Shown: in pieces, positions 12,322 through 42,509 of the stretch
Layout of the letters: each line of letters starts with the position of its first letter
Position numbering within the stretch: position 1 is the first letter of the stretch
Assembly: GCA_002269645.1 (NCBI GenBank)
Contig: NIVC01001573.1
Location: 222,802 to 266,497 of the forward strand
Reading direction: 5' to 3'
From: Macrostomum lignano
Taxonomy: Eukaryota
DNA length: 43,696 nt
Notes under the pieces: generated by a model
What the model was told of the DNA's origin: nothing
The model's input: only the letters and a program-made list of their open reading frames with translations
Database searches by the model: none
Position numbers and translations under genes: made by a program

Positions 12322-15300
12322 ATGGCTTCAGGCACTCCCATGGAGGTGTCAGTTAGAAATGCCCGCAATGTGCTGATAAGAATTGTCAAAAAAGACCGCC
12401 GCCTTCCGCAGCCCGATGAAATGGCTGAACTAATCAGCATTGACTGCGACTTAGAAATGAAATACCAGCCAATAAGTGTATCTGTACTGCTGCAAAATGT
12501 ACGGGGCAAGCTTAGCAATGTACGGTCTGCGTGCACCCTGCTGCGCAATAAAATGAAGCAGCTGCTGCTGCCGCGGGAGGACCGCAGCACCGATTGGTCA
12601 GTCATGAAAGCCAGCTATCTTCGCTCGTTGCCTAACGCCGCCAAACTCCTTGAAACTATTGGCTTTGTTCTTTGCGGCGAAAATTTTATTGCTAATGAGG
12701 ATCGCATCACATTGCAATCTGTTGTCGACTTTCTGGTAGACGTATCCATGGTAACCGAGGAATTGTCCTTGTATCTTAGCGGACAGCATCCGCGAATGGA
12801 CGTTATTAAATCCTATACATCCGCTGCAGGACAGCTTGAACAGCGGCAGCAACAGACCCACATTACAACAAACCCGCTGCTGATTGTGCAGGAGAGTGAA
12901 CTGCCTGCTCAGAAGGAACCTTCTGGTATTCAGCGCAGAACGGCCACTCTTCCATCATTGCCATCGCCTCCGCTTTCAACTCCCCTTGTCGCTGTATCCT
13001 CTGCTGCAACTGAATCAACAGGACAGAAGCCTCTGCAATCTGCTCAGCAATTTGAAGATCTGAGCCAACAGCCAACCCAGAAACCAAGACCTCCTCCGAC
13101 TCCTTCCTCATCTGCGCCGGCTCAGCTACTCTGCGACCTATGCGGTGATGAGCCTGTTGCATTGGTCTGCAGCAACGAAGCCTGTCCTAGGCGGCACCTG
13201 TGCCTTGGCTGCGATCAGCGCTGGCACGGTCATCCTAGTCGGCGCGGTCACGAGCGCGAAGGTGCCGATACTGTTGAGCTCAGGCGCAAGATTCCATCGA
13301 GTATGACAGCTTCGGCTGTAGCCACGCTTCCTAGGTCCAGAACAGCCTTGGAGCCTGCAGCGTCCGGAATAAAACCGCGCTTGGTAGTGGCGTCTGGCGG
13401 CAAAAATTATGTTAGCTACGTGTCCCAGTTGGGCTTAGCAGCTTCAAACTTCGACTCAGAGCAACAACAACAGTCAAAAGGGAAAGATCAATCTTCAGAT
13501 GTTCAATCTGATGATTTGAAAATACCAAACGAACGTGAAGAACAACAGACTGATGCAGCAGCAACCAAAAAGCAAGAGACTGAAAGTTCAGAGAGTCAAG
13601 AAAGAGAGGAGAAGCAAAGAGGACAGGAAGAACAAGAGAGGCAAGAGCGTAAGGAGCAGCAGAGAAAGCAGGAGGATCTAGAGAAAGAGCGTGACCAGCA
13701 GAGAAGACAGGAAGAACAGGAAAGACAAGAGCAAGAAGAACAGCAAAGAAAGCAGGAGGATCTAGCGAAACAAGAGCGTGAACAGCAGAGAAGAAGGGAG
13801 GAGCAGCAAAAGCAGGAGCGAGAGGAGCTTAGTAGACAGGCGGAGCGAGGAAGAAAAGAACAAGAGAAGCGGATAGCGCAAGAGTCTGACAGCCCAATGG
13901 ATCAAGACTTCGAGCCAAGTCAGCCTGATCATACTAACCAACAGTCGACTGTGCTGCAGCAGATGCTTCAATTCGAGGCAATGGACATCGCAGGCAACAT
14001 GTACTCTAGTGGAGGTGGAAGCCTCGGAAAACCTGACTGGGACTCGAACGGTTTTGCTACAATGCCCACACGCAAAGCTGCACCTAAATTTGTTGATGAT
14101 AGTAACCAAGATGATTGTTCAAACGAGATCTACCGGTCACCCACACAACAAGCGCACCAGAGCCTTACTCAAACTCTTGAATCCAATTCTCACGGCCGCA
14201 GCCACAACCTGGAGCGCCATCGCGAGGGTCTAAGTCAAATTTCACGAGTTGAAGCTAGCCTGGACTTGCGACAGGAAGAGCTGCTAACTTACATGCAAAT
14301 GCTCGAAGTGCGCCCGCATTCAGATCAGGCTCCCGCTGTACCAACGTCAGCTGGCTTTCCGTCTCCGTCTCCGCCACCGACTCCACCGCCGCAACACCCT
14401 TTGCCCGAAGCGCCAATTCTCGAAGCTGAAACTACAGAAGCTCGAATTGCGAGTGAGGAAGACAGCGACCAGGGCAGGTGTGATGAATTTCATACACCTA
14501 GAGCTTCGCCTCCGCCTCTTCCTTCAGCACAGATCGCGTCTTTAACTGATCCAACCGGTCCAGAACACGAGATGGATGATTCAAGCTGGACCTGTCCTAT
14601 CTGTACTGTCAACATCCCTCGCAGCGACCTGAAGATTATTGAAAATAGCAATCGTGCTGTTTGCCCCGTGTGCAGCATGTCTTCCGAGCTTGACACTTAC
14701 AACCAAGTGGAACGCACTGATGCTGGGACGAGCCAATCAGCTACAGCTTCTTCCTCCAGTTGGGAGTGTCAAGTTTGCACTTTTGTCAACAGCGACACTG
14801 ACTGCTGTCAGATCTGCGAGAACCGTCAATCATCGTCTTCTTCATCTGCCGCCGTACCGTCGGCACCCCTAGAGCAGTCAGAATCTGAAGCTTCGGCCAT
14901 CGCTGATAGAAACGCCCGCCTGCTCGATACAATTCGTCGCGCCGACAGCGGCGACGGCGACAATCAAATTGCGGACTCTCGCGTGATTATCGCCGCCTTG
15001 GCCGCGGCTGGCGACCGGGACATTCCGGATGCCCAACTGATCGACTGGGTTCGCCAGGAGTGGCCCCGCCGAGTCGATCGCGTCCGCTTGGAAGCCACGC
15101 GTCGCTACCTCGCCAATCGGCCGGACCTGAAGCCGCATGCGCTGGAAGAGCTGGCTTTCTCGCAACACGAAGTGTCCGAAGCCATGGCCGACTGTCCGCA
15201 CCTGTCCGAGGCCGACTGCCTGCCGGTGGTGCTGGACCAATGCTCCAGGCGCCGCGAACGCGCGGTGCAGGAGTTGGCGCAGCTCTACCCGAACCTGAGC

Positions 15301-15930
15301 TGCCGCGATCATCACGCAGCCGTGGCCAGAGCCGATGGCAGCTTAGAAAAGGCACTCGACCAGCTCAACGGATTAGTGCTGGACAGTTACCTTGGCGACC
15401 TGTCACTGGCCGGCGACGGCCCCGATGCGGACGCTGCTGCTTGCGTCGCATTCGACGGCAGCCAGTTCTCGCTGCACACCCTCATGGTGGACCACGGACT
15501 GCGCAGCGAGTCCATCGCCAGGCGCCTCACTAAGCTGCACAATCACGAAGACTTCGGCCACCATCAGTTGGAGGATCTGGTGGAAGCTGTTAAGGCCACA
15601 GACTGTATGCTGGATGAAGAGAATTGGCTGGAAGAAGTCAGCAGCTACATGAACAAGCAGTGCCCGATCTGCACCGAGAAGTATCCGCGGCACCAATTCC
15701 TGGCCATGGTGAACTGCGGCTGCGAGCTGTGCCAGGAGTGCTTCTATGGCTTCGTCACTACCAATATGAAGGACATGCACGTGACTCACCTGAACTGCCC
15801 GGTGTGCCGCTATCCCAAGGCTAACGATGTTGAGGCATTGCAGTTGCACTTTCAGCACATGCTGGCTCAGATTGCTCACTTCCAGCATCCGGCTTTGCGA
15901 TTTGAACCGGATGATGTAAACCGACTGCAG
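12322..15930 (+). CDS. RNF31: HOIP/RNF31 exon 1 (PUB-like, B-box, coiled coil, two NZF, UBA-like, RING1)
   Basis: The first ATG is at 12322. Motifs: AKLLETIGF (PUB-like), CDLCGD...LCLGCDQRWHGHPSRRGH (HOIP-type B-box), WTCPIC..CPVC and WECQVCTFVN..CQIC (NZF), and CPICTEKY...NCGCELCQEC...LNCPVC (RING1). The donor is CAG|GTGAGT at 15930/15931. The spliced product is about 1470 aa. Confidence 0.9.
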
Positions 15931-15952
15931 GTGAGTTTGCTATTAAAGAGTT

Positions 15953-16200
15953 GCTAGTAAATCAGAAGTAGCTACTAGTAAATCAGAAGTAGCTACTAGT
16001 AGATCAGAAGTAGCTACTAGTAAATCAGATATAGCTACTAGTAAAAAGAAGTAGCTACTAGTAGATCAGAAGTAGCTACTAGTAAATCAGATATAGCTAC
16101 TAGTAAACGAGAAGTAGCTACTAGTAAATCAGAAGTAGCTACTAGTAAATCAAAAATAGCTACTAGTAAATCAAAAGTAGCTGCTAGTAAATCAGAGTAG
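15953..16200. repeat. 21-bp minisatellite (GCTACTAGTAAATCAGAAGTA) in HOIP intron 1
   Basis: About 11-12 visible units. Confidence 0.93.
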
Positions 16201-16333
16201 CAGAAGATGACAGCTCAAAAGCGAAATAATGTTCAGGAAAAACTAAACGCTACTGCTTATAGTACTACTAAGTAGCGAGTAGTGTGCATTTATTTTCAAC
16301 ATGAAACCCACAACCCGCACTCGAACAACCCAG

Positions 16334-16788
16334 GACCGCCTGTTCGACTGGCAGACGATGCGCAACCCCGACTTCGTCTGGTGCAGCCACTGCGGCACCG
16401 GCTTCGAGCTGGATGCCGAGGCCGGCCAGAACCGGTTCACCTGTCCCCGGTGCCGCCGGGACACCTGCAGGGAGTGCCGCAAGCCGTGGGAGAAGCAGCA
16501 CAAAGGACTCAGCTGCGAAGACTTCGAACGCTGGAAGCAGGAGAATGATCCGGAGTTCCAGACCAGAGGCGTCGCCTTCTATCTGCAGCAGCACGGCATC
16601 GAGTGCCCGGCCTGCCACTTCAAGTACGCCTTGGCTGGCGGCGGCTGCCTGCACTTTGTGTGCCGAATGTGCCGGGCGAATTTCTGCTCGGGCTGCGGCA
16701 ATCTGTTCCAGCATACGGACAGCCAGGGCCTGGCGTGCCGTCATCCGCGTAGCTGCCTCTACCATCTGAGAGATTTCGATATTGACAG
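16334..16788 (+). CDS. RNF31: HOIP/RNF31 exon 2 (IBR, RING2 with catalytic Cys, start of LDD)
   Basis: The acceptor is CCCAG|GAC (phase 0). The exon encodes DRLFDWQTMRNPDFVWCSHC...CRECRKPWEKQH...WKQENDPEFQTRGVAFYLQQHGIECPACHFKYALAGGGCLHFVC, closely matching human HOIP ([40 protein letters not shown]). The catalytic TGC is at 16646. The donor is AG|GTGAGA (phase 2). Confidence 0.93.
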
Positions 16789-16801
16789 GTGAGAAAAATT
16801 C

Positions 16802-17119
16802 CTATTGTATCTATTGTATGTTTATATGGCCCCAATTGGGCCAGGTGTGCAACCGACAGCTCAGCCGCAGCTATTGTTGCGCGGCGCATCTGAAGGCTGC
16901 GTACGGCTGTTCAGTCCAAGGACTGGGGGGGGGGGTCGCCACACACACCCTCAGTTACCCCAGCTGATGCTGGCACCAATTTTACAGCTGGGTGAACTGA
17001 AGCAATGCGCTAAGTTAAGTGTCTTGCTCAAGGGCACAAAATTGTTGCAGTGGGATCGGGAATCGAACTCCCGACCTTCAAGCTGTGATTAGTCCGACGC
17101 TCCAACCACTAGGGTACAA
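16802..17119 (-). mobile_element. tRNA-derived SINE (CORE/Meta-like central domain) in HOIP intron 2
   Basis: The minus-strand head has an A-box-like TAGTGGTTGG and a B-box GTTCGATTCC, followed by TTGTGCCCTTGAGCAAGACACTTAAC. A homologous second copy lies at 25121-25380. Confidence 0.75.
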
Positions 17120-17684
17120 CCTCAGAGCATTAGAGCTACCACTAGCTGAAAATGTCCAGCTGGTTTGGTTACTGTCAAGTCTTGATCAGATACATCAGTG
17201 ACCAACCATCAACTAAAGCCAGAGCTGCTGCAGACACATTTAGTCAACGTGCTGATGAAATTTTATAGGCTTGGCAAGGTCTGATTGGCGCACAGTGGTG
17301 TATTGAATACACTGGCGCTTAAGCGAAAATCTGACCTTCTGACCTTGAGAAAGTGCGCAACAAAAAGTTACGAGCGTAGCTTTGGTTTTAAATTTTGTGT
17401 GCCTGATGTGACAAAAAATGTCAGAAGGGATACCAACCTTGGTAGTTACTACTCATAGCGAAAATACTACTCATAGCAAGTAGTTTCATGCTGTTCAAAA
17501 AAAGTAAGAACCGTATCTTGGTACTTATAGTAGTTAGACATAATCTACACACAATGTAAAGGTTATTTCTATTGGTGAATAGATCAGGCTGTTATATCAT
17601 GAATCTGGAACTAGACTACTTATATGAGTAGTCAATACTAGAAATCAGTCTATACGATCCTGTTTACTCGCATCGGCCTCGCAG

Positions 17685-18033
17685 GCTACAGCAGCTGCTT
17701 CGCATGCACAAAGTCGAATTTCGCTCTTTCGTACCCGACGACGAAGAGTTCGACGAGTGCAAAGTGATGGAGCAGAAGGAGACAGCCGACGGCCTGGTTG
17801 ATGAGGCCTGCAGCAGGCGGGTGCACCCCGGCCGGGCCAACCTGTGCGACAAGCACTACTCAGAGTACCTGGTGACGCTTATCAATAGGAACCGGCTGGA
17901 TCCGGTTGAGATCATGACGCCTGACGAGCTCGTGGCCGTGTGTAGGCGGCACGGTCTCCAGGTGGCCTTGGGGTCAAAAGAGGTCAACGTGGCGGAACTG
18001 AAAAAAGCGATCCTGGCTCAGTGCCCGCTCTAA
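17685..18033 (+). CDS. RNF31: HOIP/RNF31 exon 3 (linear-ubiquitin-chain determining domain)
   Basis: The acceptor GCAG|G restores R-LQQLLRMHKVEF. The exon contains CKVMEQKETADGLVDEAC...LCDKHYSEYLVTLINRNRLDP (human CRVIEQKEVPNGLRDEAC...HYKEYLVSLINAHSLDP). Stop TAA at 18031-18033. Confidence 0.92.
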
Positions 18034-18208
18034 GCCGGTTGCGACAGCGTTTTTTATGACAGCAACTTGCCATCAGTTTGTTTAACAAGTTTTTCTGTGC
18101 ATCATCCCCGACTTAAAAGTCCGTTGTCGTTTCATCATTTCTGCTAAAGTTGACGTTTAGCATCCATAAATTTCCACTCGTGACAGCAGCCACTATTAAA
18201 CAAGGATT

Positions 18209-19015
18209 GCCACTAGTATCCACGAACCAGCCACTAGTATCCACGAACCAGCCACTAGTATCCACGAACCAGCCACTAGTAACCAGAAATAGCCACTAGT
18301 ATCCACGAACAGCCACTAGTATCCACGAACAGCCACTAGTATCCACGAACAGCCACTAGTATCCACGAACAGCCACTAGTATCCACGAACAGCCACTAGT
18401 ATCCACGAACCAGCCACTAGTAACCAGAAATAGCCACTAGTATCCACGACCAGCCACTAGTATCCACGAACAGCCACTAGTATCCTCGAACAGCCACTAG
18501 TATCCACGAACAGCCACTAGTATCCTCGAACAGCCACTAGTATCCACGAATAGCCACTAGTATCCACGAACAGCCACTAGTATCCACGAACAGCCACTAG
18601 TATCCACGAACAGCCACTAGTATCCACGAACAGCCACTAGTATCCACGAACAGCCACTAGTATCCACGAACAGCCACTAGTAACCAGAAATAGCCACTAG
18701 TATCCACGAACAGCCACTAGTATCCACAACCAGCCACTAGTATCCACGAACAGCCACTAGTATCCACGAACAGCCACTAGTATCCACGACCAGCCACTAG
18801 TATCCACGAACAGCCACTAGTATCCACGAATAGCCACTAGTATCCACGAATAGCCACTAGTAACCAGAAATAGCCACTAGTAACCAGAAATAACCACTAG
18901 TATCCACGAAAAGCCACTAGTAACCAGAAATAGCCACTAGTAACCAGAAATAGCCACTAGTAACCAGAAATAGCCACTAGTATCCACGAACAGCCACTAA
19001 TATATACGAACAGCC
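18209..19015. repeat. 20/21-bp minisatellite (AGCCACTAGTATCCACGAAC and AGCCACTAGTAACCAGAAAT variants)
   Basis: About 40 visible tandem units. Confidence 0.96.
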
Positions 19016-19709
19016 TCTCTACGAAAAGTTACAAAAACCAATGAGATGCATACAAGCGCAATTCTTGAACATTCCCATATTCGACTCATCTTTCCATATC
19101 TCGATGAATAGCTTCACGAGTCTAATAAATGCTGCTACTCATTGTATCTAATCCTGATTTTGTCTAAGTATTTGAATATCTCCATTTTATTGACCAGAAT
19201 GCACTTTGGTTATAAATATATAACGCATATTCCTCTGATCTACAGCGCCACATGCGACCGGACCCAGCTAGCTGGCTTATTCAGAGTCACTTCGAAAACT
19301 CGCTTCATAAAACAAATTTTAGAATCATATTTTTTCAAAGTCTTCAACTGATATAAAATCAATTAACACTTGAATTTACTCTTTCGTGATTGATCGCTTT
19401 GTAGTATGTACTGCATTGAATTTATTTTCCATCAGAGACTTCAATTATCTTTCATAATTACAAAGTATGGAGTTCCTTGAATTATTGCGGTAAAGAATTG
19501 TCTCTGCCTACATATTTTCTGTTTTATTATTAATATATGTATATTTGTTACTCCAGACTAATCTGACGCTTTCATTTAGTCAGTTTCGACTTTAAATTGC
19601 CTTTAAACGCCTTTAAATTCATTGCATGCTATATGGTTATTTAGAACTTATAGATCCTAGCTATATCAAATATCATATTTAGGGCATGTTCGATAGATTC
19701 CTTTTGAAT

Positions 19710-20898
19710 GGAGCATTTCACCTGGAGGTTCCTTCAGAAAGAGACATTTCATCTGGTAGATTCCTTTTGACTAAGACAATTCACCAGGTAGATTCCTTTT
19801 GAATATGGCATTTCACCTGGTAGGTTCCTTTCAATGGGACATTTCACCTGGTAGATTCCTTTTAAATGGGATATTTCACCTGGTAGATTCATTTTGAATA
19901 TGGCATTTCACCTGGTAGGTTCCTTTCAATGGGACATTTCACCTGGTAGATTCCTTTTAAATGGGATATTTCACCTGGTAGATTCATTTTGAATGGGATA
20001 TTTCACCTGGTAGATTCATTTTGAATGGGATATTTCACCTGGTAGATTCATTTTGAATGGGATATTTCACCTGGTAGATTCATTTTGAATGGGATATTTC
20101 ACCTTATAGATTCATTTGGAATGGATATTTCACCTGGTAGATTCATTTTGAATGGGATATTTCACCTGGTAGATTCATTTTGAATGGGATATTTCACCTG
20201 GTAGATTCATTTTGAATGGGATATTTCACCTTATAGATTCATTTGGAATGGATATTTCACCTGGTAGATTCATTTTGAATGGATATTTCACCTGGTAGAT
20301 TCATTTGGAATGGGATATTTCACCTTATAGATTCATTTGGAATGGATATTTCACCTGGTAGATTCATTTTGAATGGGATATTTCACCTTATAGATTCATT
20401 TGGAATGGATATTTCACCTGGTAGATTCATTTTGAATGGGATATTTCACCTGGTAGATTCATTTTGAATGGGATATTTCACCTGGTAGATTCATTTTGAA
20501 TGGGATATTTCACCTTATAGATTCATTTGGAATGGATATTTCACCTGGTAGATTCATTTTGAATGGGATATTTCACCTGGTAGATTCATTTTGAATGGGA
20601 TATTTCACCTGGTAGATTCATTTTGAATGGGATATTTCACCTTATAGATTCATTTGGAATGGATATTTCACCTGGTAGATTCATTTTGAATGGATATTTC
20701 ACCTGGTAGATTCATTTGGAATGGATATTTCACCTGGTAGATTCATTTTGAATGGGATATTTCACCTGGTAGATTCATTTTGAATGGATATTTCACCTGG
20801 TAGATTCATTTTGAATGGGATATTTCACCTGGTAGATTCATTTTGAATGGGATATTTCACCTGGTAGATTCCTTTTGAATGGGACATTTCACCTGGCA
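19710..20898. repeat. 31/32-bp minisatellite (TTCACCTGGTAGATTCATTTTGAATGGGATAT)
   Basis: About 37 units, degenerate at the left end, abutting the next gene. Confidence 0.96.
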
Positions 20899-20923
20899 GA
20901 TAATTTTTGTCTCTCATCTGTGC

Positions 20924-23017
20924 ATGGCTTACAGTCTGTCCGCTCAGAGTCAAGCGGCTGCAGCCTCAATGCAGCCGCACCAGCAGCCAAATCTCCGTGA
21001 GGTTGAGATGTGCAGCTTCTGCGGCGACAATCCTGTGCAGCGGATCTGCTCAGAGCCCAGCTGCAGTCGCAATCGCCTGTGCAAAGACTGCAGCGTACTG
21101 TGGCACGGCCATCCGAATAGGAAAGATCATCGAGTTCATGACGTTAACGATGACAAAAATAGCTCGCACTATAACATGCCTCCGCAAACACGGATTATCC
21201 AGCACAGGGCCAAGACTTCTGAAAGTTCTATCCAGCGGCACAAGTCCTGTTTGCCACAGGAACGTCAATCGTCAACCATGCAGCGAACCTCCAGTGGCGC
21301 TCAATATGACACCCTTGCAGCACGAGCGCAAACCGCTGCAGAGGCTCCGGCTGCTATTGGCGGTGGTGTGGAGTGGCAGTGCGAGCACTGTACTTTCATG
21401 AACAGTCCTGAAAGTCCGGCTATTGACTCGACTCGGCGCCTACTTTGCGAAGTCTGTGGCAAAACAACTGATCGAGCTGTTGCTACTCAGAGGGCGCCAA
21501 TGTCTTTTGATAGCCAGCGTCCAGTTCAAGCTCCGCAGCAATGCCAGCAGCCTGATGTTGTTTTAAAACAACCGCAGTCTGTGGACAGCGCACTGGCAAG
21601 GGAGAGCAAGCGCCCAGTGTATTCTTCAACTACTGTGAGAGATTCGAATGGATTTGATCCGATGTCACAGCAGCAGTCTCAGACAAACTATTCAAGGCAA
21701 CATGAAGCCAACGGGCAGTCAGTTAATCAAAATGTCCTTCAACCACAATATGCGCAGCAACAACAGACCCAATCTAGTAGTTTAAGCTCTGCTCCAAAAA
21801 CCTCGTACGAGCAGTCTCGTGACCAAAAACACGAACCTTCACTCGATTCAGCTACAGATAATCCACCACTGCAGGCCGTACGCGGGGAACCGCAGGTCCA
21901 GCATCGTCTGAGACAGGAAACATTCCAGCAGATTCGCAACATGAATGCTCCTGATACAGAGAAGGAGCTTTTGCTAAGACTTGTCCAGGATCCAAAGTTC
22001 TGTAAATTTCGGCTAGACGATTTGGTGAAGGCTGTTCAGTCTGGCGGTGAGCTCGCTTACGAAGACGAGTTCATGCTTGCCTACCTGTGCAGCAAATGCC
22101 AGAAGTGTGAAAAACCCGAGCCTCGTCACTACCAAGTGTGCATGGCTCAGTGCTCTTGTCAACTGTGCTTTGATTGCTTTAGAAAGTTTGTGTTCGAGTG
22201 CCTCAACCCTGCTAGCAACATCAGCCCGAGTCGATTTTCTTGTCCTGGCTGTCAGCAGCCCAAGCCAGACGATGTGGAGCACTTTGCTACTCACATAAAC
22301 TTTCTGAGCTTGCAGCTTGAGCAGATCGTAGAGACTTGCAGCTGGGTTAGTGAAGCTGTCATTGCTGACTTTGAAAGGACTTCAGACGAATGCTGCCGTG
22401 AGTTGTCTATAAAGATAAGTAAATTTTCTGACACGCTGTCTTCCACTCAACCAGCTTATGATAGGCTAAACGCGAAAGGATTTTACTGTCCAGAATGCCA
22501 ATGTTTTTTTCCGAGTTCGAAATCCACCGCGGATCATATTGCATGCTACAGCTGCAAGCATTCATTCTGTCCTTGCTGCAACACCGCAAGTTCTATAATG
22601 CTGTCTAGCCATGAGAAGCAGTGCTTCTTTAAGTCTAAGAATGTCAGCATTTCCGTGCTACAGTTTATACTGAAAGAGTCTAAAATTCCTTTCGACAAGA
22701 CCGCCAGGCGCAGACGGAACAAAAGCTCATCCGAAAGGGGCGGAAGAAAGATCGTTGATGAGGAGTGGCGATGCTCAGCGATCGACTTTAAACATGGAGG
22801 TTCCGGTAGCGGTGGCTTTCTACAGTGCGAAAATCGAGTCTACAAGAAGGTTTGCGTCTGTGAGCGGCACTACAAGGAGTACCTGTTGGACTTGATCAAT
22901 GAGAACAATATCGTTATGGAAAACGTATGTTCGTCGTTATCGGCCTTTAAAATAAACTGGGTTGAAAGGGGTCGATATATGAAGAATTTCTTTAAAAGCC
23001 TTTTTTCCGACGGGTAG
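20924..23017 (+). CDS. HOIP-like paralog 2, intronless: B-box, NZF, RING1, no IBR, RING2 with catalytic Cys->Ala, LDD (predicted pseudo-ligase)
   Basis: B-box CSFCGD...LCKDCSVLWHGHPNRKDH; NZF WQCEHCTFMN...CEVC; RING1 CQKC...QCSCQLCFDCF...SCPGC. RING2-like CPECQCFFPSSKST-A-DHIACYSCKHSFCPCC aligns gap-free to CPACHFKYALAGGG-C-LHFVCRMCRANFCSGC. LDD ...CERHYKEYLLDLINENN. The start could be 20924 or 20969. Confidence 0.82.
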   Translation: MAYSLSAQSQAAAASMQPHQQPNLREVEMCSFCGDNPVQRICSEPSCSRNRLCKDCSVLWHGHPNRKDHRVHDVNDDKNSSHYNMPPQTRIIQHRAKTSESSIQRHKSCLPQERQSSTMQRTSSGAQYDTLAARAQTAAEAPAAIGGGVEWQCEHCTFMNSPESPAIDSTRRLLCEVCGKTTDRAVATQRAPMSFDSQRPVQAPQQCQQPDVVLKQPQSVDSALARESKRPVYSSTTVRDSNGFDPMSQQQSQTNYSRQHEANGQSVNQNVLQPQYAQQQQTQSSSLSSAPKTSYEQSRDQKHEPSLDSATDNPPLQAVRGEPQVQHRLRQETFQQIRNMNAPDTEKELLLRLVQDPKFCKFRLDDLVKAVQSGGELAYEDEFMLAYLCSKCQKCEKPEPRHYQVCMAQCSCQLCFDCFRKFVFECLNPASNISPSRFSCPGCQQPKPDDVEHFATHINFLSLQLEQIVETCSWVSEAVIADFERTSDECCRELSIKISKFSDTLSSTQPAYDRLNAKGFYCPECQCFFPSSKSTADHIACYSCKHSFCPCCNTASSIMLSSHEKQCFFKSKNVSISVLQFILKESKIPFDKTARRRRNKSSSERGGRKIVDEEWRCSAIDFKHGGSGSGGFLQCENRVYKKVCVCERHYKEYLLDLINENNIVMENVCSSLSAFKINWVERGRYMKNFFKSLFSDG

Positions 23018-24031
23018 TGTTTTTATTTGCCTGGTTAAGTTTTTATTGTGTAGGACTTTGTGCAGAAGATGAAGCTTCTTTTCACATCTTCTGTGTAGTT
23101 TGTAGAAAACGAAGCTACACGTAAGCTAAGCGTTTTGTCTGTTCCATTTGCGTGTTGTTTTTTATGCTGCAAGGTTCAATGATTTCTTTGTAGAATTCCT
23201 CACGACCATTCCTGACTTCATGATCAATTAATTGTAATCGTAATAGCACCATAAAAACTCTTTAATCTTATTTAGTCATAGATCTACAAGCGCTTAGTTA
23301 AAGTCGCTGTGGTTAAAACGATTTCTAAGAAAAGTAATAACTTACAGTTAAAGTTTTGTAAATTAAGATAAATAGCTTGTGAATTCAGTTAAATCATTTT
23401 ACATCCGGGATCCAACATTTTACTCAAACTATTTTAAATATCGCTTCGTAGAACTATGCGTATCGTATACATTGGCTACTACATGTATTTATACATAACC
23501 AAAATGAAAGGGTCAAAGGCTGCTTCTGCTGTTATTAAATGCTTCTATTGTGCAGTGTTATTAAATATTAAATAGCTATATAATTTTTACTCTTAAGGGT
23601 TTTGATATTTGTTTAACTATAATTATAATTACAGTTAAAACTATATTACGAATTATTAAACACGTACATTGTACAGTAAAACAATCTGTAGGAACGTGAG
23701 CCTCTCAATTACTTGAGTGTGCTAATAAAGAATAAAAGAGTTGAAGATCATATTAAAATCCCCTCATACCTACAGAGTCAGCAAGAGTCCATTCTTATCT
23801 ATGCATACCTGCTTAGCATGCGTCTTTGAGATCAGTGGTTTTAATATGATCCTGAGCCTCGGCACAATGATTACGTACGCTATCTCAACATTGTGCGTTC
23901 CCCTTAAATGTTTTATAGCTCGTATCAAGCTATCATATTTTTGTCGGTATGTTTTTTATTTCTTGCCCCTGCGGTTTTGTGCCTAAAAGACAATTTTGCT
24001 GCTTGGCTATTTTTGTGCATGTACGAGAGTA

Positions 24032-24868
24032 CAGCTTTTTTTCAGTCCATTTGGGCTTGCGCGCATTGAATTTAATCCAAGATAGGCTTACCAATGTAAC
24101 GCAGCTTTTGTCTATGGTAGCAAGGCTGGCACAGCGGCGTTTACTTTGGTCCAACAAGCATCAATTTGGTCCGTAGCGTCTATGAAACCCAATCAAGAGT
24201 TGCAGCTGTAGAATTCAATTTATTTAAGCAAATCTCACTGTACTAAAGTAACACCTGGTAACATCAGAAACGTATTTTTACTTAACTATAACTACGGTAC
24301 AAAATATTTTTTTAGCATAGTCAAAACTCCGCTGAGGAAAACAAAGATTAATTGACATTTTCTGCAATGCAAGCGGGCACGAAACGCAGCATCTGCCGAT
24401 ACCAACCTACACACTTTAAAGGTGTGATGGCGGCTGTAGCGGCCTCCGCAATGCGCTGAAGTAGCAGTATTCTCCATTGGCCAAGGGTGGTGTTTGGAGG
24501 CGGCTGATCAAGCTCTAGTTGGGTGGCCGGGTCACTGTGCTCCTGCTTGATTGCAGCCTTCAGGCAGGAGTGGGCAGCCTCGACAGGATTCAGAAACGGA
24601 GAATATGGGGGGCAATTGGATGAGCTGGATCCTGTCCTGATGTAATTCCGGAATCCGGGTTCCGTAATGAAACCGCGCACCATCCATAATGATTAAAATC
24701 TAGGGGTAAAGGTATCTACAGCCGCTACGGACCAAATTGATGCTTGTCGGAACAAATTAGATGCCGCTGTGCCAGCCTTGCTACCATAGACAAAAGCTGC
24801 GTTACATTGGCAAACGTATCTTGGATTAAATTCAATGCGCGCGGGCCCAAATGGACTGCTAAAAGCTA
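24032..24868 (-). mobile_element. Internally deleted Tc1/mariner (IS630-Tc1-mariner) DNA transposon
   Basis: Imperfect TIRs of about 146 bp (24032-24178 / 24723-24868) start with CAG and are flanked by TA at 24030-31 and 24869-70. The internal minus-strand transposase C-terminus reads ILIIMDGARFH...QLPP/YSPFLNPVEAAHSCLKAAIK, with a 1-nt frameshift in a C run near 24610. Confidence 0.88.
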
Positions 24869-25120
24869 TATTCACCCCAACTCCCCCTTCTTCATCATCT
24901 GTCTTTCCATCGTAGAAACATCCATGTATTCAGTGATTTCTATAATAACTACATCGTAGCTATGTGGGCTAAGGCCCTTATTTTTATTCAGAGTTTAAAC
25001 GAATAAAGTTGTGTTTTGATTTATTTAACTGCTGGTATTTGATGCCGTCAAATATTTTTTATTCTCAGTATTATTAGCAATCGTAATAATAGTTCATTAC
25101 TTGATTACACCCACCCTAAT

Positions 25121-25380
25121 TTGGCCAGATGTGCACCCAACAGCTCAGCCGCAGCTATTGCGCGGCGCATCTGAAGGCTGCTTTCGGCTGTTCAGTCCAA
25201 GGACTGGGGGGTCGCGACACACACCCTCAATTACCCCAGCTAATGCTGGCACCCATTTTACAGCTGGATGAACTGAAGTTGTGTCCTGCTCAAGGACACA
25301 AATTGTTCTAATGGTATAGGTGGTATAGGTCGACCTCGATTAAGTCGTGAATCCGACGCTCTAACCACTAGGCTACAACC
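25121..25380 (-). mobile_element. tRNA-derived SINE, second copy
   Basis: Colinear with 16834-17119 (CAGCTCAGCCGCAGCTATTG...TTACCCCAGCT...GCTCAAGGACAC...TCCGACGCTCTAACCACTAGG). Confidence 0.75.
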
Positions 25381-25548
25381 CCTCATTTTAAAAAATGGCA
25401 GTAAAGCAGTATTTGTGTAGGACATAGGTAATTAGACCCGTAAATATAAATGTCACTTAATCTTCTATTTCAGAAACGCGTCGAATTTCAAATCAAACCT
25501 GTTTTCCTCATCTGTGGCGATAAACGCAATTCGCACTATTAGTTTGCC

Positions 25549-28028
25549 ATGGCAACAAGCGCAGCTGCTGGCATCAACGAGGTTGAAATGTGCAAATTCT
25601 GCGGCGACGAGCCTGTCGCTCGCGTCTGCACAGCTCCGGCCTGCGCGCGCAAGCAGCTGTGCGTCAACTGCGACGAGATCTGGCACGGCCACCCGAGCAG
25701 ACGCAGTCATCAGCGGCAGGAGGTTGATGTTTTATTGCGAGAAAACGGCCGCAGTGACCAGCCGTTGACGCAACCGCAGCAGCAAGGTTATCCTTGGTCG
25801 TGTCCGCACTGCACATTTCAAAATGTCAGCGCAGTTCAATGGAAGCCAGAAGATCGGTTGATGTGCGAAGTGTGCAGCAAGACCAGCGTTGGCAGGGAAT
25901 TGAGAGAAGCTGCACCAGCTCAGACAAGCAACAGCAATACAACCAAGACTAAGAAGTCGAGTAAAAAGTCTTCATCACCAAGCACGGAGATTGCCTGTCC
26001 TACTTGCACCTTTGTCAATACTGCGAAGGGAGCAAAACAATGCGAAATGTGCAACTCTCAGCTGCCATCGCCTTCGAAAAAGCGTGAAAATCCAGCAGCT
26101 GCTTCGCCTAATGCGGAGAATAGTATTGGATTAAATGACTTGAGTCCTCAAGAAAGACAGAGGCAGTTTCAAGCTCAAGCTGCAATTGGCAGACAGAATG
26201 CTGGGCGTTCGAATCAGGGAGATCAGCAGCCGCCCAGCCAATCAGACAGCGAATCTCATAGAAAGCAGGCGCATGCTTCAGCGGTGGAAGACCGCGTAGA
26301 ACAAAAGCGCCAGCGAACTCAGCCGCCGTCTGAAAATCGTGCTGCAGCTGTGGAAACCTCGGCGAATTCTCTAAGAAAAGAGACGCGGGCGTTTTCCAGG
26401 TCCGACGTGGTACCGGCCGGCATCGCTACAGAGTCCAAACAGCTTGAAGATGCTGAGTATCCACTCTATCAGCAGCAGTTGGAGGAAAAGGAATTGCAGG
26501 TACAACTGGCTGAACTGCTGGCAGTCCAGGAGGCAGAAAAAAGGCAGTTTACTCAGGCTCAGCTGCAGGAAAGAGAGCAGCTAATACAGGAACTGCAGAC
26601 GCGGCTAAAAGAAGAGCAGGAGCAGAGACTTCGTACAGAGAGGCGTTTTAAGAAAGAGGCCACGGAAAGACAGCGGCTGGAGTTGGCAATGCTGGAGCAG
26701 CAGCGGCTGGAGAGAGAAAAAAGAGAAGAACTCGAAAGGCAAGCGAGAATCAAAGATGAGAACAGGAGGCAGAGAGAAGGTGAAGAAATGCGACAACGGA
26801 AGAGAAGAGAAGAGGCGGAACGAAAGAAAAAAGAGAAGGAAGAGGCTGAGCGGTTTAGAAAGGAGAGAGAAGAGGCTGAGCGGTTGAGACAGCAGAGAGA
26901 AGAGGCTGAGCGGTTGAGAAAGGAGAGAGAAGAGGCTGACCGGTTGAGACAGCAGAGAGAAGAGGCTGACCGGTTGAGACAGCAGAGAGAAGAGGCTGAG
27001 TGGTTGAAACAGCAGAGAGAAGAGGCTGACCGGTTGAGACAGCAGAGAGAAGAGGCCGACCGGTTGAGAAAGGAGAGAGAAGAGGCTGAGCGGTGGAGAA
27101 AGGAGAGAGAAGAGGCTGAGCGGTTGAGAAAGGAGACAGAAGAGGCGCAGCGACTGTGGAAGAGAGAAGAGGCTGAGCGACAACGAAGAAACCAATCTCT
27201 GCGGAACGCGTCGGCAGCCGTAGGGCGATGGGAAAGGGCAGAGGAAGAGCGGCTGCGCCAAGACCAAGAGGCTGAAGCCATGCAGAATGACCTTCAGCTG
27301 ATCAGAAAGACGAGGCTGCAAAGAGGTAAACAGGTGCCGCTGGATGAAAATCCCAGAAAATATCAAGGTGACGAAGCGAGGCAGAGAAGGGCAGATGATA
27401 CGACTTGGCAGATGGAAGCGGTTACTCATGCCAGCGGTCTGCAGTTTGGGGCCGATGCGATCTCATTTCCATCCCGTGCTAGATCATCGGCAACAGTTTC
27501 ATCGAGGCGAGTTGAGGATTCTGAGTCTGTTGATGCTGCTGAAAAGTTGCTTAATGGGATATATGGTCCTGAAACATCAGTAAATGACCTTCACAAAGTA
27601 AATACGTCTGATGAATCTGATGAGTTTGATGAGCCAAAAAATCGTCTACTCGAGTTACTGGCAGAATGAAAGCTCAAAAGGCTGAGACGAAACTGCAATG
27701 CGCTCACTGCGGCAAGTACAGAGCCATTACGGGCCCTATTAAACCTGTTGGTTTTCAGTGCTTTAATTGCTACAAGCACACTTGCAAGATGTGCGGCCGG
27801 CCTTGGGAAGATGTGCATACAGGCAGAAAGTGCAAAGAACTTGACAGTCTTCCAGGAGTAGCCCCTTCTCCAAAGCGTGGCTCTGTGAGCCGACCTGGGA
27901 GTGCACAGATTCAGGTCATGCGGTGCACGAGATGTCGTGTCCATGTGGATACAAATTTGAAAAGAGACTCATCGAATGTTATGTGTCGCAATTGTGGAAA
28001 TATTTTGCATCTTCCGAGACCCTACTGA
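25549..28028 (+). CDS. HOIP-related paralog 3: B-box, two NZF, long E/R coiled coil, IBR plus truncated RING2-like zinc ribbon (one-base frameshift at 27636-27641)
   Basis: B-box CKFCGD...LCVNCDEIWHGHPSRRSH; NZFs WSCPHCTFQN..CEVC and IACPTCTFVN..CEMC. ORF 25549-27669 overlaps ORF 27666-28028 (CAHC...QCFNCYKHTCKMCGRPWEDVH..C, IBR-like). The paralog at 33165 has A7 where this copy has A6 and reads through in frame. Confidence 0.75.
26840..27180 (+). repeat. 33-bp coding tandem repeat (11-aa EEAERLRQQRE), single-alpha-helix/coiled-coil like
   Basis: About 10 units GAAGAGGCTGAGCGGTTGAGACAGCAGAGA-like; also present at about 32920-33165. Confidence 0.9.
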
Positions 28029-29290
28029 GTTTTTTATGCATGTTGTCGATCGGTACAAAGCGATGGTCTATAGCTGCAGAAAGTTAAGATTGGTTATTGC
28101 TAGCTCGTGCTAACTGTACTCGATAAATTTTCGACCATATTCCTAATAGAAAACACTCCTATGATTTGAATTATTCTAGTTACTTCTCTTAATTTCAAAC
28201 CCTGTCCTCTATGTGATAAAAAGAAATTCAAAATTAATTTAATATTGGTAGTTTTTACGGCGTACGAAGTCATCTGATGGCCTTTATTGTTTTTTGTTTT
28301 TCTGCCCACAATGTTTATGTTTTTATCCACTCAAGTGCCGTGAATTCATAAAAATGACTGAAAACGTATATTTAGGGCTGTGAGTATGAAAAAAATATAT
28401 CAATGTAGTTTTATATTAACGACAAGTATTAGTATAAAGCCATTAGTTATAGATTCATGATCCAGTTTGACAGTCCACTGTAGTTCAAGTATCGCAGTAT
28501 CTCGAATTCTATTTCTGTACTGTCAGTATCCTTTTAGTGTAAATTAGTCATGAATGGCCTCGGATTTTTCATTTTTTCGTTATAACAAAATGTACTAAGC
28601 GTTTGCGTGTATTCCAGAACGGCAGAAGCCTTCGTCCTACAGTAGTACACGTCGACTTTTGATTTTGTACTTTCTGTTTTTTTCAGACCAAAATATATCA
28701 ATTTTTGTAACGTTATTTTTATCACTATGGTGCTAATAGTGCTTTGGTGTTTGTTTTTATTTTTAGTAATACAGGACTAGCAATCCGCCCTCCCCCCAAT
28801 GGGAGGCAAAAACTAAAGCAATAAGGTTTTGACCTTGTACAGTCATTATTGTTAGTTTCTTGAGGAAAATGGTGTTTAAAGCAAAACAGCAACAGCCCCG
28901 AAAGTCGGCTATCTGGCCTAAGATATCAGCATCCCCTGTGAGCTTTGGCATCAAAACCTCCCTTTAAGCCATGGCTTAACTTAAACCCTTCTCCCCTATG
29001 ATGCTTGGCCTACCAACAACTTCCGATTGAGCCTTGACATCTCATCATCTCCTCACTAAGAGCCACAGAATTTCTACAACTCCCCCGTGCGCTTTGACAA
29101 TTCAGCAGTTTTTAATTGAAAAGTTACCCAGAAAATTCTAATCGAAAGAGTAACTACTGACGTACTTAAACGAGTTGTTTTTTGTCTAAATGACTAAGGC
29201 TGCTTGCGTCACCCCTCAAAGCAGTCACAGTGAGCTAGTGGTCAATACAGCTGAACACATACAGCAAACCTTTTCGAACATAAATTCCAG

Positions 29291-30081
29291 ATGTCGCTGT
29301 TTGACGTTCGCTCGATTGCGTGGACCTGCGCCGGCTGTAGTCTTAGAAACGAGCTTCGATTTCATTGGTCTCCACAGCTGCACCAAAAGATGGTGAAGCT
29401 GACTGTGCTAAGCTTGAGAAGCTCCATCAGGCCAGCTCTGAGTTTCCTTCCTGCCTGACCTCGCTCGAGTGCGGCCAGTGCGGCTGCCTCGCTGCCAGCT
29501 GCGTTTCGCCGCGAGGAGTTTTCGGCGCCTCATCATCGTCTAACAAAGGAGAGCTCCGTCTTGAGCCGCGGCATAGGTTGGCCTGCCTACAGAGGCGGGC
29601 TCGAGTTCAGCTTGAGCAGCTGCGGAAACTGACTGACCAGCTGAGCTCTGTTGAAGCTGCGGTAGCCGCAACCGAACTGGCTGATCAAGCTGCAGGTAGA
29701 GAGGCTGAAAAATTGGCTGAAACTGCCTCATCTTCCAGAGCTGCCAGCAGCCGCCGCGGTTCCAGCTGGTCCGAGCGGCTGTTCGGCTCCCTGGCCGGTC
29801 TGGCCCGGCACAACAGACGGCAGTCGTCACTGTCTGCAGCAACTACTGACAGTAGCAAAGACGTTGACGCTTTCGAGCGTTGGAGGTCTGGAGTTCGAGC
29901 CCAGCTGGCCGCCGAAGCCGAAGCCGCCAGGCAGCGTCGAGCAGCCGAGACGCCGGAGCAGCGGCGCAAACGAGCCCAGCGTCGGCGAGATCGACGTCTC
30001 CGACGCCGGCTGAAGGAGGCCGAAGCCGAAGTCGAAGAGCGTCGGCGTCGGGAGGCCGAGACAGCGTTTTCATCTGGTTAA
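29291..30081 (+). CDS. NZF-like plus coiled-coil exon/gene (frameshift near 29350)
   Basis: TTCCAG|ATG SLFDVRSIAWTCAGCSLRN joins by a 1-nt shift to ORF 29365-30081 (...TSLECGQC...VSPRGVF...LRKLTDQL...). It is paralogous to the exons at 30210 and 31347. Confidence 0.5.
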
Positions 30082-31112: not shown

Positions 31113-31265
31113 ATGTCAGCGGACAGCCCGCCCCAGCTGTGCAGCCGTTGCAACAGCCGGCCCGCAGTGCTCGCCTGCGCTGAGTGCCCCGGTCAGCTGC
31201 TGTGCGACACCTGCGACACCGACTGGCACCAGCAGACTGAGGAGCGGCGGCTGCATCGCAGATCG
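31113..31265 (+). CDS. HOIP-related paralog 5, exon 1 (B-box)
   Basis: MSADSPPQLCSRCNSRPAVLACAECPGQLLCDTCDTDWHQQTEERRLHRRS, 51 codons, with a phase-0 donor TCG|GTGAGC. Confidence 0.75.
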
Positions 31266-31346
31266 GTGAGCAGCTCGTGCTGGGCTGAGTGAATATTGTC
31301 ACTGATCTGAGTTTATATTTAATGAGTAGCATCGCACAATTTTCAG

Positions 31347-33559
31347 ATTCACCTGGCTGGCGCTGCTATCGTGTCCTGGACGTGCAGGCACTGCCTATTT
31401 TCGGAAAACCAGCATGTTTTGACCAACTCGGATTCGCAGTACTTGGTGTGCTTAGTGTGCGAGACCGAGAGCGCAGAGTTTTTCCGCGTTGACGGCATCG
31501 TGTGCTCTGACAGAGTAGCGGATCAGATCAGACAGGACTCAGGGAGAATTGCTGAGCTGACTGATCAGCTTGGCCAGTTAAAGCTGCAGCTCGAGGCTCA
31601 GGAGGCTGAGTTACAAACATCTGCGGTTCAAAGCAGAGAACTGCACGTTCAGCTGCAGGAAAGAGAGCAGCAAATACAGGAGCTGCAGAGGCGGCTAAGA
31701 GAAGAGCAGGAGCAGAGACTTCGTACAGAGAGGCGTTTCGAGAAAGAGGCCACGGAAAGGCAGCGGCTGGAAAGAGAAAAAAGAGAAGAACTCGAAAGAC
31801 AAGCGAGAATCAAGGATGAGAACAGGAGGCAGAGGGAAGCTGAAGAAATGCGACAGCGGAAGAGAACAGAAGAGGCAGAACGAAATAAAATAGAGACAAA
31901 AGCGGCTGAGCGATTGGAAAATCGTGTCGCAGCAGCGGAAGCCTCGGCAAATTCTCCAAGTAGAGAGACGCGAGCGTCTTCGAGGTCCGACATGGTACCG
32001 GCCGGCACCGCTACAGAGTCCAAACAGCTTGAAGATGCTGAGTATCCACTCTATCAGCAGCAGCTGGAGGAAAAGGAGTTGCAGGTACAACTGGCTGAAT
32101 TGCTGGCAGTCCAGGAGGCAGAAAAAAGACAGTTAACTCAGGCTCAGCTGCAGGAAAGAGAGCAGCTAATACAGGAGCTGCAGACGCGGCTAAAAGAAGA
32201 GCAGGAGCAGAGACTTCGTACAGAGAGGCGTTTCGAGAAAGAGGCCACGGAAAGGCAGCGGCTGGAAAGAGAAAAAAGAGAAGAACTCGAAAGACAAGCG
32301 AGAATTAAGGATGAGAACAGGAGGCAGAGAGAAGGTGAAGAAATGCGACAGCGGAAGAGAACAGAAGAGGCAGAACGAAAGAAAATAGAGACAAACGCGG
32401 CTGAGCGATTGGAAAATCGTGTCGCAGCAGCGGAAGCCTCGGCAAATTCTCCAAGAAGAGAGACGCCAGCGTCTTCGAGGTCCGATATGGTATCGGCCGA
32501 CATCGCTACAGCGTCCAAGCAGCTTGAAGATGCTGAGTATCCACTCTATCAGCAGCAGATTGAGGAAAAGGAGTTGCAAGTACAACTGGCTGAACTGCTG
32601 GCAGTCCAGGAGGCAGAAAAAAGGCAGTTTACTCAGGCTCAGCTGCAGGAAAGAGAGCAGCTAATACAGGAACTGCAGACGCGGCTAAAAGAAGAGCAGG
32701 AGCAGAGACTTCGTACAGAGAGGCGTTTCAAGAAAGAGGCCATGGAAAGGCAGCGGCTTGAGTTGGCAATGCTGGAGCAGCAGCGGCTGGAGAGAGAAAA
32801 AAGAGAAGAACTCGAAAAGCAAGCGAGAATCGAGGATGATAAGAGGAGGCAGAGAGAAGGTGAAGAAATGCGACAACGGAAGAGAAGAGAAGAGGCGGAA
32901 CGAAAGAAAAAAGAGAAGGAAGAGGCTGAGCGGTTGAGACAGCAGAGAGAAGAGGCTGAGCGGTTGAGACAGCAGAGAGAAGAGGCTGAGCGGTTGAGAC
33001 AGCAGAGAGAAGAGACTGAGCGGTTGAGACAGCAGAGAGAAGAGGCTGATCGGTGGAGAAAGGAGAGAGAAGAGGCTGACCGGTTGAGACAGCAGAGAGA
33101 AGAGACTGAGCGGTTGAGACAGCAGAGAGAAGAGGCTGATCGGTGGAGAAAGGAGAGAGAAGAGCCAAAAAAATCGTCTACTCGAGTTACTGGCAGAATG
33201 AAAGCTCAAAAGGCTGGGACGAAACCGCAATGCGCTCACTGCGGCAAGTACAGAGCCATTACGGGCCCTATTGAACCTGTTGGTTTTCAGTGCTTTAACT
33301 GCTACAAGCACACTTGCAAGATGTGCGGCCGGCCTTGGGAAGATGTGCATGATGGAAGAAAGTGCAAAGAACTTGACAGTCTTCCGAAGTAGCCCCTTCT
33401 CCAAAGCGTGGCTCTGTGAGCCGACCTGGGAGTGCACAGATTCAGCTCGTTTACTGCCCGGGATGTCGTTGCAATGTGGATACAAATCTGCAAAGAGACT
33501 CATCGAATGTTATTTGTCGCAATTGTGGAACTGTTTTGCATCGTCCGAGACCCTACTGA
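31347..33559 (+). CDS. HOIP-related paralog 5, exon 2: NZF-like, repeated 165-aa coiled-coil module, IBR, zinc ribbon (frameshift near 33386 gives a stop at 33392)
   Basis: Acceptor TTTTCAG|ATT, in frame with ORF 31371-33392. The 3' part is nearly identical to paralog 3. A 1-nt deletion relative to paralog 3 creates TAG at 33390-33392, and the homologous frame continues to PRPY* at 33559. Confidence 0.75.
31640..32780 (+). repeat. 495-bp internal tandem duplication (165-aa module, two full copies plus a partial third)
   Basis: Shadow ORFs 31649-32023 and 32144-32518 are offset by exactly 495 nt, and QLQERE...QLEDAEYPLYQQQ recurs. Confidence 0.9.
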
Positions 33560-41377: not shown

Positions 41378-41426
41378 TATAAGTGGATTGCTATCACAGT
41401 CTATACAGGCAGCCTTATCTAAACAG

Positions 41427-41626
41427 GAGGTCTGCCAGATTGTCCAGCTACCCAGCAGGGTACTGCGCCTTCTGCTCAGCAAATACCGCTGGGACAAAGA
41501 CCTGCTGTTGGAGCGATTCTACGAGCGCGAGCCGGAGGACTTCCTGGCCAGGCACAACATCCCGGCCAGTCAGTGGCGGATCGTCGCTGCCGCTCCCGCG
41601 GCACCGCAGGCGGCAGTGGCACACAG
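41427..41626 (+). CDS. ARIH1: Ariadne RBR ligase exon 2 (UBA-like)
   Basis: The acceptor AAACAG|GAG gives MHRIVQ|EVCQIVQLPSRVLRLLLSKYRWDKDLLLERFYE (human ARIH1 [32 protein letters not shown]). The donor is AG|GTTAGT (phase 2). An alternative acceptor lies at 41409. Confidence 0.8.
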
Positions 41627-42030: not shown

Positions 42031-42036
42031 TCGCAG

Positions 42037-42494: not shown

Positions 42495-42509
42495 GTGAGA
42501 CTACGAAAT

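Follow-up and report, generated by a model that had tools for sequence, protein, structure and literature searches.

A HOIP-like protein of Macrostomum lignano with alanine at the catalytic position of RING2: a candidate non-catalytic RBR pseudo-ligase encoded next to an active HOIP gene

The stretch of DNA analysed here, referred to as the window, comprises 43,696 nucleotides of Macrostomum lignano (assembly GCA_002269645.1, contig NIVC01001573.1, positions 222,802 to 266,497 of the forward strand). It contains an active HOIP gene, HOIP-A, and in tandem with it a gene predicted to encode a HOIP-like paralogue with a dead catalytic site, which is the subject of this analysis and is termed the target in the following. 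HOIP (RNF31 in human, LUBEL in Drosophila) is the RBR ligase that forms Met1-linked ubiquitin chains. HOIP-A is located at 12322..18033 (+) with exons at 12322-15930, 16334-16788 and 17685-18033, and its predicted product of 1470 aa has the GGC-L-H, LRD and EQKE motifs intact.

The target is encoded by an open reading frame (ORF) at 20879-23017 (+) that comprises 712 codons and contains zero stop codons in the reading-frame translation. Since the ATG at 20879 sits within a satellite array of 32-bp units (19694-20901), the ATG at 20924 (Met16) is regarded as the more plausible start, and the GenBank models of the gene copies start one codon after it. The coding sequence thus spans 20924..23017 (+), specifies 697 aa and needs no intron. 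The lack of the two introns of HOIP-A was set aside as an indication of a retrogene origin, because the target and HOIP-A share no more than about 25% identity and an active short HOIP gene of M. lignano (P0004, see below) is intronless as well.

No Pfam match to the PUB or UBA domain was found in the target, and the protein begins at a B-box-like zinc finger (C45-H87; 21011..21139, +), which was detected by tblastn, is approximately 49% identical to that of HOIP-A and is also common to the paralogues encoded further downstream. It is followed by an NZF-like (RanBP2-type) finger of the pattern W-x-C-x2-C-T-F-x-N...C-x2-C (21374..21457, +), for which the Pfam match remained below significance. 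This finger has a long insert but retains the T-F pair typical of ubiquitin-binding NZFs, so that ubiquitin binding appears possible on the basis of the motif. In place of the UBA region of full-length HOIP a low-complexity linker rich in Gln and Ser was identified (21476..21943, +). The pre-RING1 three-helix module (21959..22087, +) is conserved in all HOIP homologues of the alignment. The remaining forward-strand features are RING1 (22097..22252) with its eight zinc ligands C407, C410, C425, C427, C430, C433, C455 and C458, a post-RING1 helix together with a degenerate IBR remnant of 78 aa (22253..22486), a RING2 or Rcat-like domain (22487..22624) and an LDD-like C-terminal domain (22625..23014).

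The decisive feature of RING2 is the codon at 22529..22531 (+), which reads GCG in the context AAA TCC ACC GCG GAT CAT (K-S-T-A-D-H) and specifies Ala551 at the position of human C885, whereas the neighbouring HOIP-A has the catalytic TGC at 16646-16648 within G-G-C-L-H. Eighteen active HOIP homologues from amphioxus, Lingula, a crinoid, fishes, a cephalopod and others were used for comparison. The spacing C-x2-C-x10-[C/A]-x-H-x2-C-x2-C-x4-C-x2-C is the same in the target and in these homologues, all of which (18/18) carry GGC[MLI]H. RING2 of the target aligns without gaps to that of HOIP-A and, in a phmmer search against PDB sequences, to human HOIP (5EDV), where Ala551 stands opposite C885. 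The G-G ahead of the catalytic position is replaced by S-T and the HPRDC of active HOIP by HEKQC, while all zinc ligands and the equivalent of His887 (His553) are retained. A sequencing or assembly error at 22529 was rejected as an explanation, since GCG is present in all three genomic copies of the gene (the window copy, L001 and L003). With alanine in place of the RING2 nucleophile, the protein is predicted to be unable to form the E3~ubiquitin thioester that is canonical for RBR ligases.

The RBR-LDD parts of 22 sequences were aligned together with fragments of human HOIP, which provided the human numbering. The zinc ligands of RING1, RING2 and the LDD finger form invariant columns over 21 sequences including the target. 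Most residues with a known role in ligase activity have been exchanged. At the position of human V701 the target carries Lys409 (22103-22105, +), compared with I, V, L, M or F in 16/18 active HOIPs and Ala or Thr in the remaining two. Of the E2 interface, the target retains the equivalents of D724, C725 and P745. Directly after the last Cys of RING1 it has Gln, at the position where RINGs have the linchpin Arg or Lys. In HOIP, V701 together with C725, I732 and P745 forms a hydrophobic pocket that receives A2, P62, F63 and P97 of UBE2L3 (PMC8944867).

Between the final Cys of RING1 and the initial Cys of RING2 the target has a spacer of 78 aa, which includes 3 Cys and 2 His, while the spacer of HOIP-A comprises 131 aa and 14 Cys or His. 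No Pfam match to the IBR was obtained, the only cysteines left in this remnant are C487, C505 and C506, and both the conserved RING1-IBR linker helix KLRDW.LM..PNFRWC and most IBR ligands are missing from the target. To judge from short stretches such as CSW and DECC, the region looks like a shrunken remnant with several deletions and not like a clean replacement.

The LDD is the sole domain of the target found by Pfam (PF18091; 28.5 bits at a gathering cutoff of 23). Its RHYKEYL..LIN helix is retained and so are the finger ligands C632, C661 and H664 (equivalents of C969, C998 and H1001), the fourth ligand (C986 equivalent) aligning one residue off at C650. In contrast, L934-R935-D936, invariant in 18/18 active homologues, corresponds to S-K-N in the target, the equivalents of R935/D936 being Lys587-Asn588 (22637-22642, +), and the invariant Q974, E976 and D983 are replaced by F, H and G. 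R935 and D936 of HOIP contact Glu16 and Thr14 of the acceptor ubiquitin, and their exchange for Ala leads to a loss of linear ubiquitination (PMC7125101). The exchange of Cys for Ala is thus not the only defect of a protein that would otherwise be a competent enzyme; the alignment indicates a wholesale loss of ligase determinants with the zinc scaffolds kept.

The earlier note on this locus had been drawn up from the nucleotide sequence and its translations. Its central observations, namely the exchange of the catalytic Cys for Ala relative to the TGC of the neighbouring gene in a gapless RING2 alignment, the retention of the His and of the zinc-ligand Cys residues of RING2 and an uninterrupted ORF of approximately 700 codons, are confirmed. 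Its description of the IBR as replaced by other sequence holds with regard to the lost Cys pattern, but has to be modified in favour of a degenerate remnant, and its description of the LDD as intact applies to the domain match, the HYKEYL..LIN helix and the finger, but not to the L-R935-D936, Q974, E976 and D983 positions.

The structure prediction that the note had called for was carried out with AlphaFold2 (AF2) on the RBR-LDD part using a 21-sequence alignment, and the model was compared with the PDB by Foldseek. It gave a divided result. With a mean predicted local distance difference test score (pLDDT) of 61.7 and a predicted template modelling score (pTM) of 0.38 the overall confidence was low. 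The pre-RING helices and RING1 reached values above 85 (91-95 in the three-helix module), RING2 scored 52-61, the LDD was patchy and the IBR remnant (model residues 125-173) remained below 50. The top 18 Foldseek matches were all HOIP. RING1 superimposed on RING1 of HOIP (7V8F) with a root mean square deviation (rmsd) of 1.5 Å and a template modelling score (TM) of 0.69-0.74, while RING2-LDD matched HOIP only loosely (TM 0.30-0.39, rmsd 6.5-10.7 Å). As a control the RBR-LDD part of HOIP-A was modelled with nearly the same alignment, which is naturally closer to HOIP-A than to the target; it reached a pLDDT of 88.1 and a pTM of 0.71, and matched the HOIP RBR with a Foldseek E value of 1e-31 and a TM of 0.73-0.82 for RING2-LDD. 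Due to the high scores of this control the poor C-terminal model of the target is attributed to divergence and not to alignment depth.

Relatives of the target were sought by an exhaustive phmmer search with residues 361-712 against 1.84 billion representative proteins and by word-indexed protein searches with the full-length sequence, with the C-terminal half and with a profile of the target and its nearest paralogue. The word-indexed search with the C-terminal half (352 aa) was unreliable, as it missed the 98%-identical copy P0001, which was recovered by the profile search. Of the 23 proteins retrieved by the exhaustive search all were HOIP-like except one repetitive protein, and the PDB matches in phmmer were all RNF31. 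That the target belongs by descent to the HOIP family follows from its LDD match, from HOIPs being its closest matches in both sequence and fold and from its place in tandem with a bona fide HOIP gene. It shares with HOIP a homologous zinc finger, NZF, pre-RING helices, RING1, RING2 and LDD. It differs from HOIP in the lack of the catalytic Cys, of a functional IBR, of the PUB and of a recognisable UBA, and in the replaced acceptor-ubiquitin and V701 contacts. Considered as an enzyme, it lacks both the catalytic Cys and IBR of RBR ligases and the acceptor contacts specific to HOIP.

A trematode protein of 2303 aa from Dicrocoelium dendriticum (P0003; CAH8494128.1, 'unnamed protein product'), in which 13 repeats match residues 155-209 of the target (..QPAYDR[LI]NA..; summed E value 1.7e-23), was rejected as a relative because it is repetitive and has no Cys pattern. 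The match is most likely an artefact of repeats or composition.

The nearest protein beyond the target's own cluster is P0002 (PAA78395.1, Mlig011956g1), which is encoded on another contig (L002:8001-11306) directly upstream of the active intronless short HOIP gene P0004 (L002:17444-19045). A truncated second copy of it (P0027, Mlig004413g2) is located on a contig of 965,811 bp. P0002 resembles the target in the B-box-like zinc finger, NZF, Q-rich region, pre-RING helices, RING1, RING2 and LDD, in the derived motifs HSFCP.C and H-x-[KR]-Q-C, in the loss of L-R-D and of the catalytic Cys and in its position adjoining an active HOIP gene. In contrast to the target, to which it is 28-30% identical, it carries Tyr at the catalytic position (codon TAT at L002:10779-10781, within a long contiguous exon) and Val instead of His887, keeps most of the IBR and possesses two RING1 modules, with Arg or Gln at the V701 position.

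Neighbour joining placed the target and P0002 together in a clade with a bootstrap value of 99.5%, and the three active HOIPs of M. lignano (HOIP-A, HOIP-B and P0004) in another with 93.5%. The target shares 24-26% identity with any active HOIP, compared with 36-53% among the active ones. The target and P0002, with its Tyr at the catalytic position, thus form a small group of dead HOIP paralogues within M. lignano. The HOIP family of this species has undergone a lineage-specific expansion that includes at least two dead lineages; each of these is found in tandem with an active HOIP gene.

With respect to the live genes, at least three distinct active HOIP genes with a mutual identity of 46-53% were detected in M. 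lignano, namely HOIP-A, HOIP-B (P0026/P0005) and a short form (P0004/P0025) of 533 aa without PUB.

The genome of M. lignano became polyploid recently and contains many duplicated blocks that are nearly identical (PMC5730564), which accounts for the presence of three versions of the target gene. Beside the window copy these are PAA67416.1 (P0001; Mlig012393g2, locus L001), annotated as 'hypothetical protein, partial', and PAA73089.1 (P0024; Mlig019305g1, locus L003), to which the target protein is 97% and 94% identical, respectively. L001, which belongs to the same assembly (GCA_002269645.1), is collinear with 14406-30067 of the window at 93-98% identity. Together with the protein identity this marks the window as nuclear DNA of the flatworm. 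An exact-sequence look-up of the window protein returned no record, so that the window copy represents a third variant distinct from both GenBank models.

The ratios of non-synonymous to synonymous substitution rates (dN/dS) between the three copies were calculated according to Nei-Gojobori and compared with neutrality by a binomial test. The copies differ at 4-6% of synonymous sites (dS 0.045-0.062, dN 0.014-0.032), and dN/dS amounts to 0.32, 0.51 and 0.49 (binomial p 4e-4, 6e-3 and 9e-3), compared with 0.13-0.21 at a dS of 0.016-0.018 for HOIP-A from the same haplotypes. The target is constrained, but less so than HOIP-A, and changes faster. The intact ORF in three diverged copies with dN/dS below 1 points to maintenance by selection and not to a pseudogene.

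The constraint is uneven along the protein, as seen from the per-domain counts among the three copies, which are small numbers: the 51 codons of the N-terminal zinc finger show 0 non-synonymous and 0 synonymous substitutions, RING1 shows 2 and 6 (pN/pS 0.07), RING2 3 and 1 (0.66) and the LDD 25 and 8 (0.81, not different from neutral). The parts mainly under recent constraint are the N-terminal zinc finger and RING1. Over longer periods the fold has been kept, since even P0002, with its identity of only 28-30%, has the HYKEYL helix and the zinc ligands in common with the target.

Two observations on the HOIP-A copies may be added. Between the polyploid copies the target (20879-23017) has accumulated about three times the synonymous divergence of HOIP-A (14407-18030), with values of 0.045-0.062 against 0.016-0.018, which could be due to gene conversion of HOIP-A or to a local difference in rate. 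Furthermore, the alignment of the HOIP-A exon 14407-15930 with L001 and L003 contains one gap in each sequence, for which two mutually compensating indels or a local artefact of the alignment could be responsible.

Transcript assemblies from RNA-seq, which had been cut at trans-splice and poly(A) sites, were the only basis of the GenBank annotation of NIVC01 (PMC5730564). The models Mlig012393g2 and Mlig019305g1 therefore imply transcripts, and the target gene is apparently transcribed, as judged from the origin of the models of two of its copies.

In our view the target is best explained as a maintained, non-catalytic pseudo-ligase or scaffold derived from HOIP, a reading to which we assign a probability of roughly 60%. 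The protein would act without catalysis as a scaffold or adaptor, with the zinc finger, the NZF (possibly binding ubiquitin) and the RING1 module as its putative interaction surfaces. The conservation of RING1 in spite of its altered E2 pocket points to a role in protein interaction, for which the pseudo-E3 RINGs BARD1 and TRAF2 offer a precedent (PMC13061254). The most plausible setting would be the pathway of the adjacent active HOIP, for instance by competing for partners or bridging them; given the tandem position next to HOIP-A, a role in its pathway is the simplest guess. A pseudo-ligase had also been proposed in the earlier note, and this part of its interpretation is borne out by the predicted inability to form the canonical thioester, three intact ORFs, dN/dS below 1 and transcript-derived gene models, while the sink roles it had considered are weakened.

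Several points weigh against this reading. The dN/dS values of 0.3-0.5 are relaxed, and for the recent period no statistical difference from neutrality was found in RING2-LDD. The word-indexed searches and the exhaustive phmmer search revealed no orthologue outside M. lignano, so that long-term conservation rests on one distant paralogue; the search for the same substitution in sister species, as suggested previously, accordingly returned only M. lignano proteins as close relatives. Long-branch attraction could inflate the 99.5% support for the clade of the target and P0002. Lys or Arg at the V701 position is no proof of lost E2 binding, as two active homologues have Ala or Thr there. No matches to the gene identifiers were found in the supplementary expression tables of the M. 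lignano papers searched, and expression is deduced from the annotation only. The case comes from a single species and from sequence evidence, and the proposal of partner and pathway is pure inference.

An alternative reading is that the target is a functionless duplicate which has not yet acquired a stop codon. Its very long branch with 24-26% identity to any active HOIP, dS and dN values 3-10 times those of HOIP-A, the pN/pS of 0.66-0.81 in RING2-LDD and the low AF2 confidence in the C-terminal half would all fit such a decay. However, all three copies have an open frame of approximately 700 codons, with differences between them at 4-6% of the synonymous sites, the overall dN/dS is significantly below 1 with RING1 and the zinc finger strongly constrained, and every structural zinc ligand is kept, even in comparison with the 28-30% identical paralogue. 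Taking furthermore into account the transcript-derived gene models, we consider a decaying gene unlikely.

The earlier note had also assumed that RING1 binds the ubiquitin-charged E2 (E2~Ub) and that the LDD positions the acceptor ubiquitin, from which it derived a dominant-negative protein or E2~Ub sink. In this case RING1 would bind the charged E2 and/or the LDD the acceptor ubiquitin and titrate them away from the active HOIP. In agreement with this idea, RING1 retains its fold and all eight zinc ligands and is the most constrained domain, the equivalents of D724, C725 and P745 in the E2 interface are present, and the LDD has kept its fold signature. However, Lys409 takes the place of V701 in the very pocket that receives F63 of UBE2L3 (Arg or Gln in the RING1s of the sister paralogue), R935/D936 are Lys-Asn and Q974/E976/D983 are lost, which weakens the case for the assumed roles of both RING1 and the LDD. 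In addition, the IBR and the linker helices, which hold the donor and allosteric ubiquitin in HOIP (5EDV), are absent. A sink is hence rather improbable.

Even less can be said for a ligase that uses another nucleophile (e.g. Cys542 in CPECQC, or Cys556) or that transfers ubiquitin directly from the E2 in the manner of a RING. It is true that His553, the equivalent of H887, is kept and that an extra Cys is found 2 residues after the first zinc knuckle (3 residues after it in the sister paralogue). The counterpart of C542 in human HOIP, however, is F876, which belongs to the strand that leads out of the zinc knuckle and precedes the catalytic loop by 9 residues; C542 would thus presumably lie at a distance from the active site. 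The E2 and acceptor contacts are lost and the sister paralogue also lacks the His887 equivalent. For the RING-type bypass of the thioester advanced in the earlier note no positive evidence was obtained, Gln instead of the linchpin Arg or Lys following RING1. Altogether, residual ligase activity of this kind seems very unlikely.

Beyond the single gene, the maintained pseudo-ligase proposed here might belong to a Macrostomum family of RBR pseudo-ligases, that is, tandem HOIP duplicates which now regulate or assist the neighbouring active HOIPs and in which RING1 would be a protein-interaction instead of an E2-binding module, as a counterpart of the non-catalytic LUBAC subunits. We put this forward as a tentative and still doubtful extension.

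Inactive relatives of ubiquitin enzymes are known from other classes. OTULINL/FAM105A, an inactive paralogue of the Met1-specific deubiquitinase OTULIN, may serve as an analogy in that it is a tandem-duplicated dead paralogue of an enzyme of the linear-ubiquitin system, although it belongs to another enzyme class and to the vertebrate lineage. Within RBR ligases the IBR or 'BRcat', a concept reportedly going back to Spratt et al. in 2014, has a RING2-like zinc fold without catalytic Cys, and RING2 of the target would in effect be a second benign Rcat; the BRcat is, however, a normal part of an active RBR, whereas in the target the true Rcat has lost its Cys and the real IBR has decayed. The RING pseudo-E3s BARD1 and TRAF2 have E3-like zinc domains without E2 binding or activity and fulfil structural or regulatory roles (PMC13061254). 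They are simple RINGs, unlike the RBR-derived target.

In the literature searched, pseudo-E3s were found only among simple RINGs and TRIMs, and reports of dead RBRs or of the present M. lignano genes were not found, although absence from the searched literature is no proof. Having lost the active-site Cys and most other catalytic contacts, the target probably represents a naturally occurring pseudo-ligase among the RBR enzymes, of which the search yielded no described example. Pseudoenzymes are well documented among kinases, deubiquitinases, E2s and simple RING E3s; if the more tentative family reading is true, the Macrostomum genes would provide the first natural pseudoenzymes described for the thioester-forming E3 class. 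A HOIP copy kept by selection in spite of its lost Cys, IBR and E2 and acceptor contacts would demonstrate the reuse of the RBR-LDD scaffold for a non-catalytic task, with RING1 and the zinc fingers as the constrained parts. Since RNA interference and transgenesis exist in M. lignano, the role of a dead HOIP beside a live one is tractable.

Downstream of the target the window contains two more HOIP-derived ORFs (25549-28028 and 31116-33392, +), both with a B-box-like finger, one or more NZFs and a long coiled-coil repeat rich in E, R and Q, followed by an IBR. The former ends in a C-x2-C-x16-C-x2-C half-RING2 without catalytic Cys. Neither has a RING1 or LDD, and coiled-coil blocks are duplicated within and between both.

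Three satellite arrays were detected, the copy numbers of which differ greatly between the window and L001: one of 21-bp units in the first HOIP-A intron examined (15954-16201), one of 20-bp units in 40 copies after HOIP-A (18209-19015) and the above-mentioned array of 32-bp units at 19694-20901, which comprises 38 copies and reaches right up to the start codon of the target.

An intronless ORF at 34098-35027 (+) is predicted to encode a RagA/Gtr1-like small GTPase of 309 aa. Further downstream, pieces of an Ariadne-like RBR gene (LLSKYRWDKDLLLERFYE) were identified within 40635-43573 (+), with the IBR at approximately 42300-42500, and these account for a weak RING2 match in tblastn at 43323-43529.

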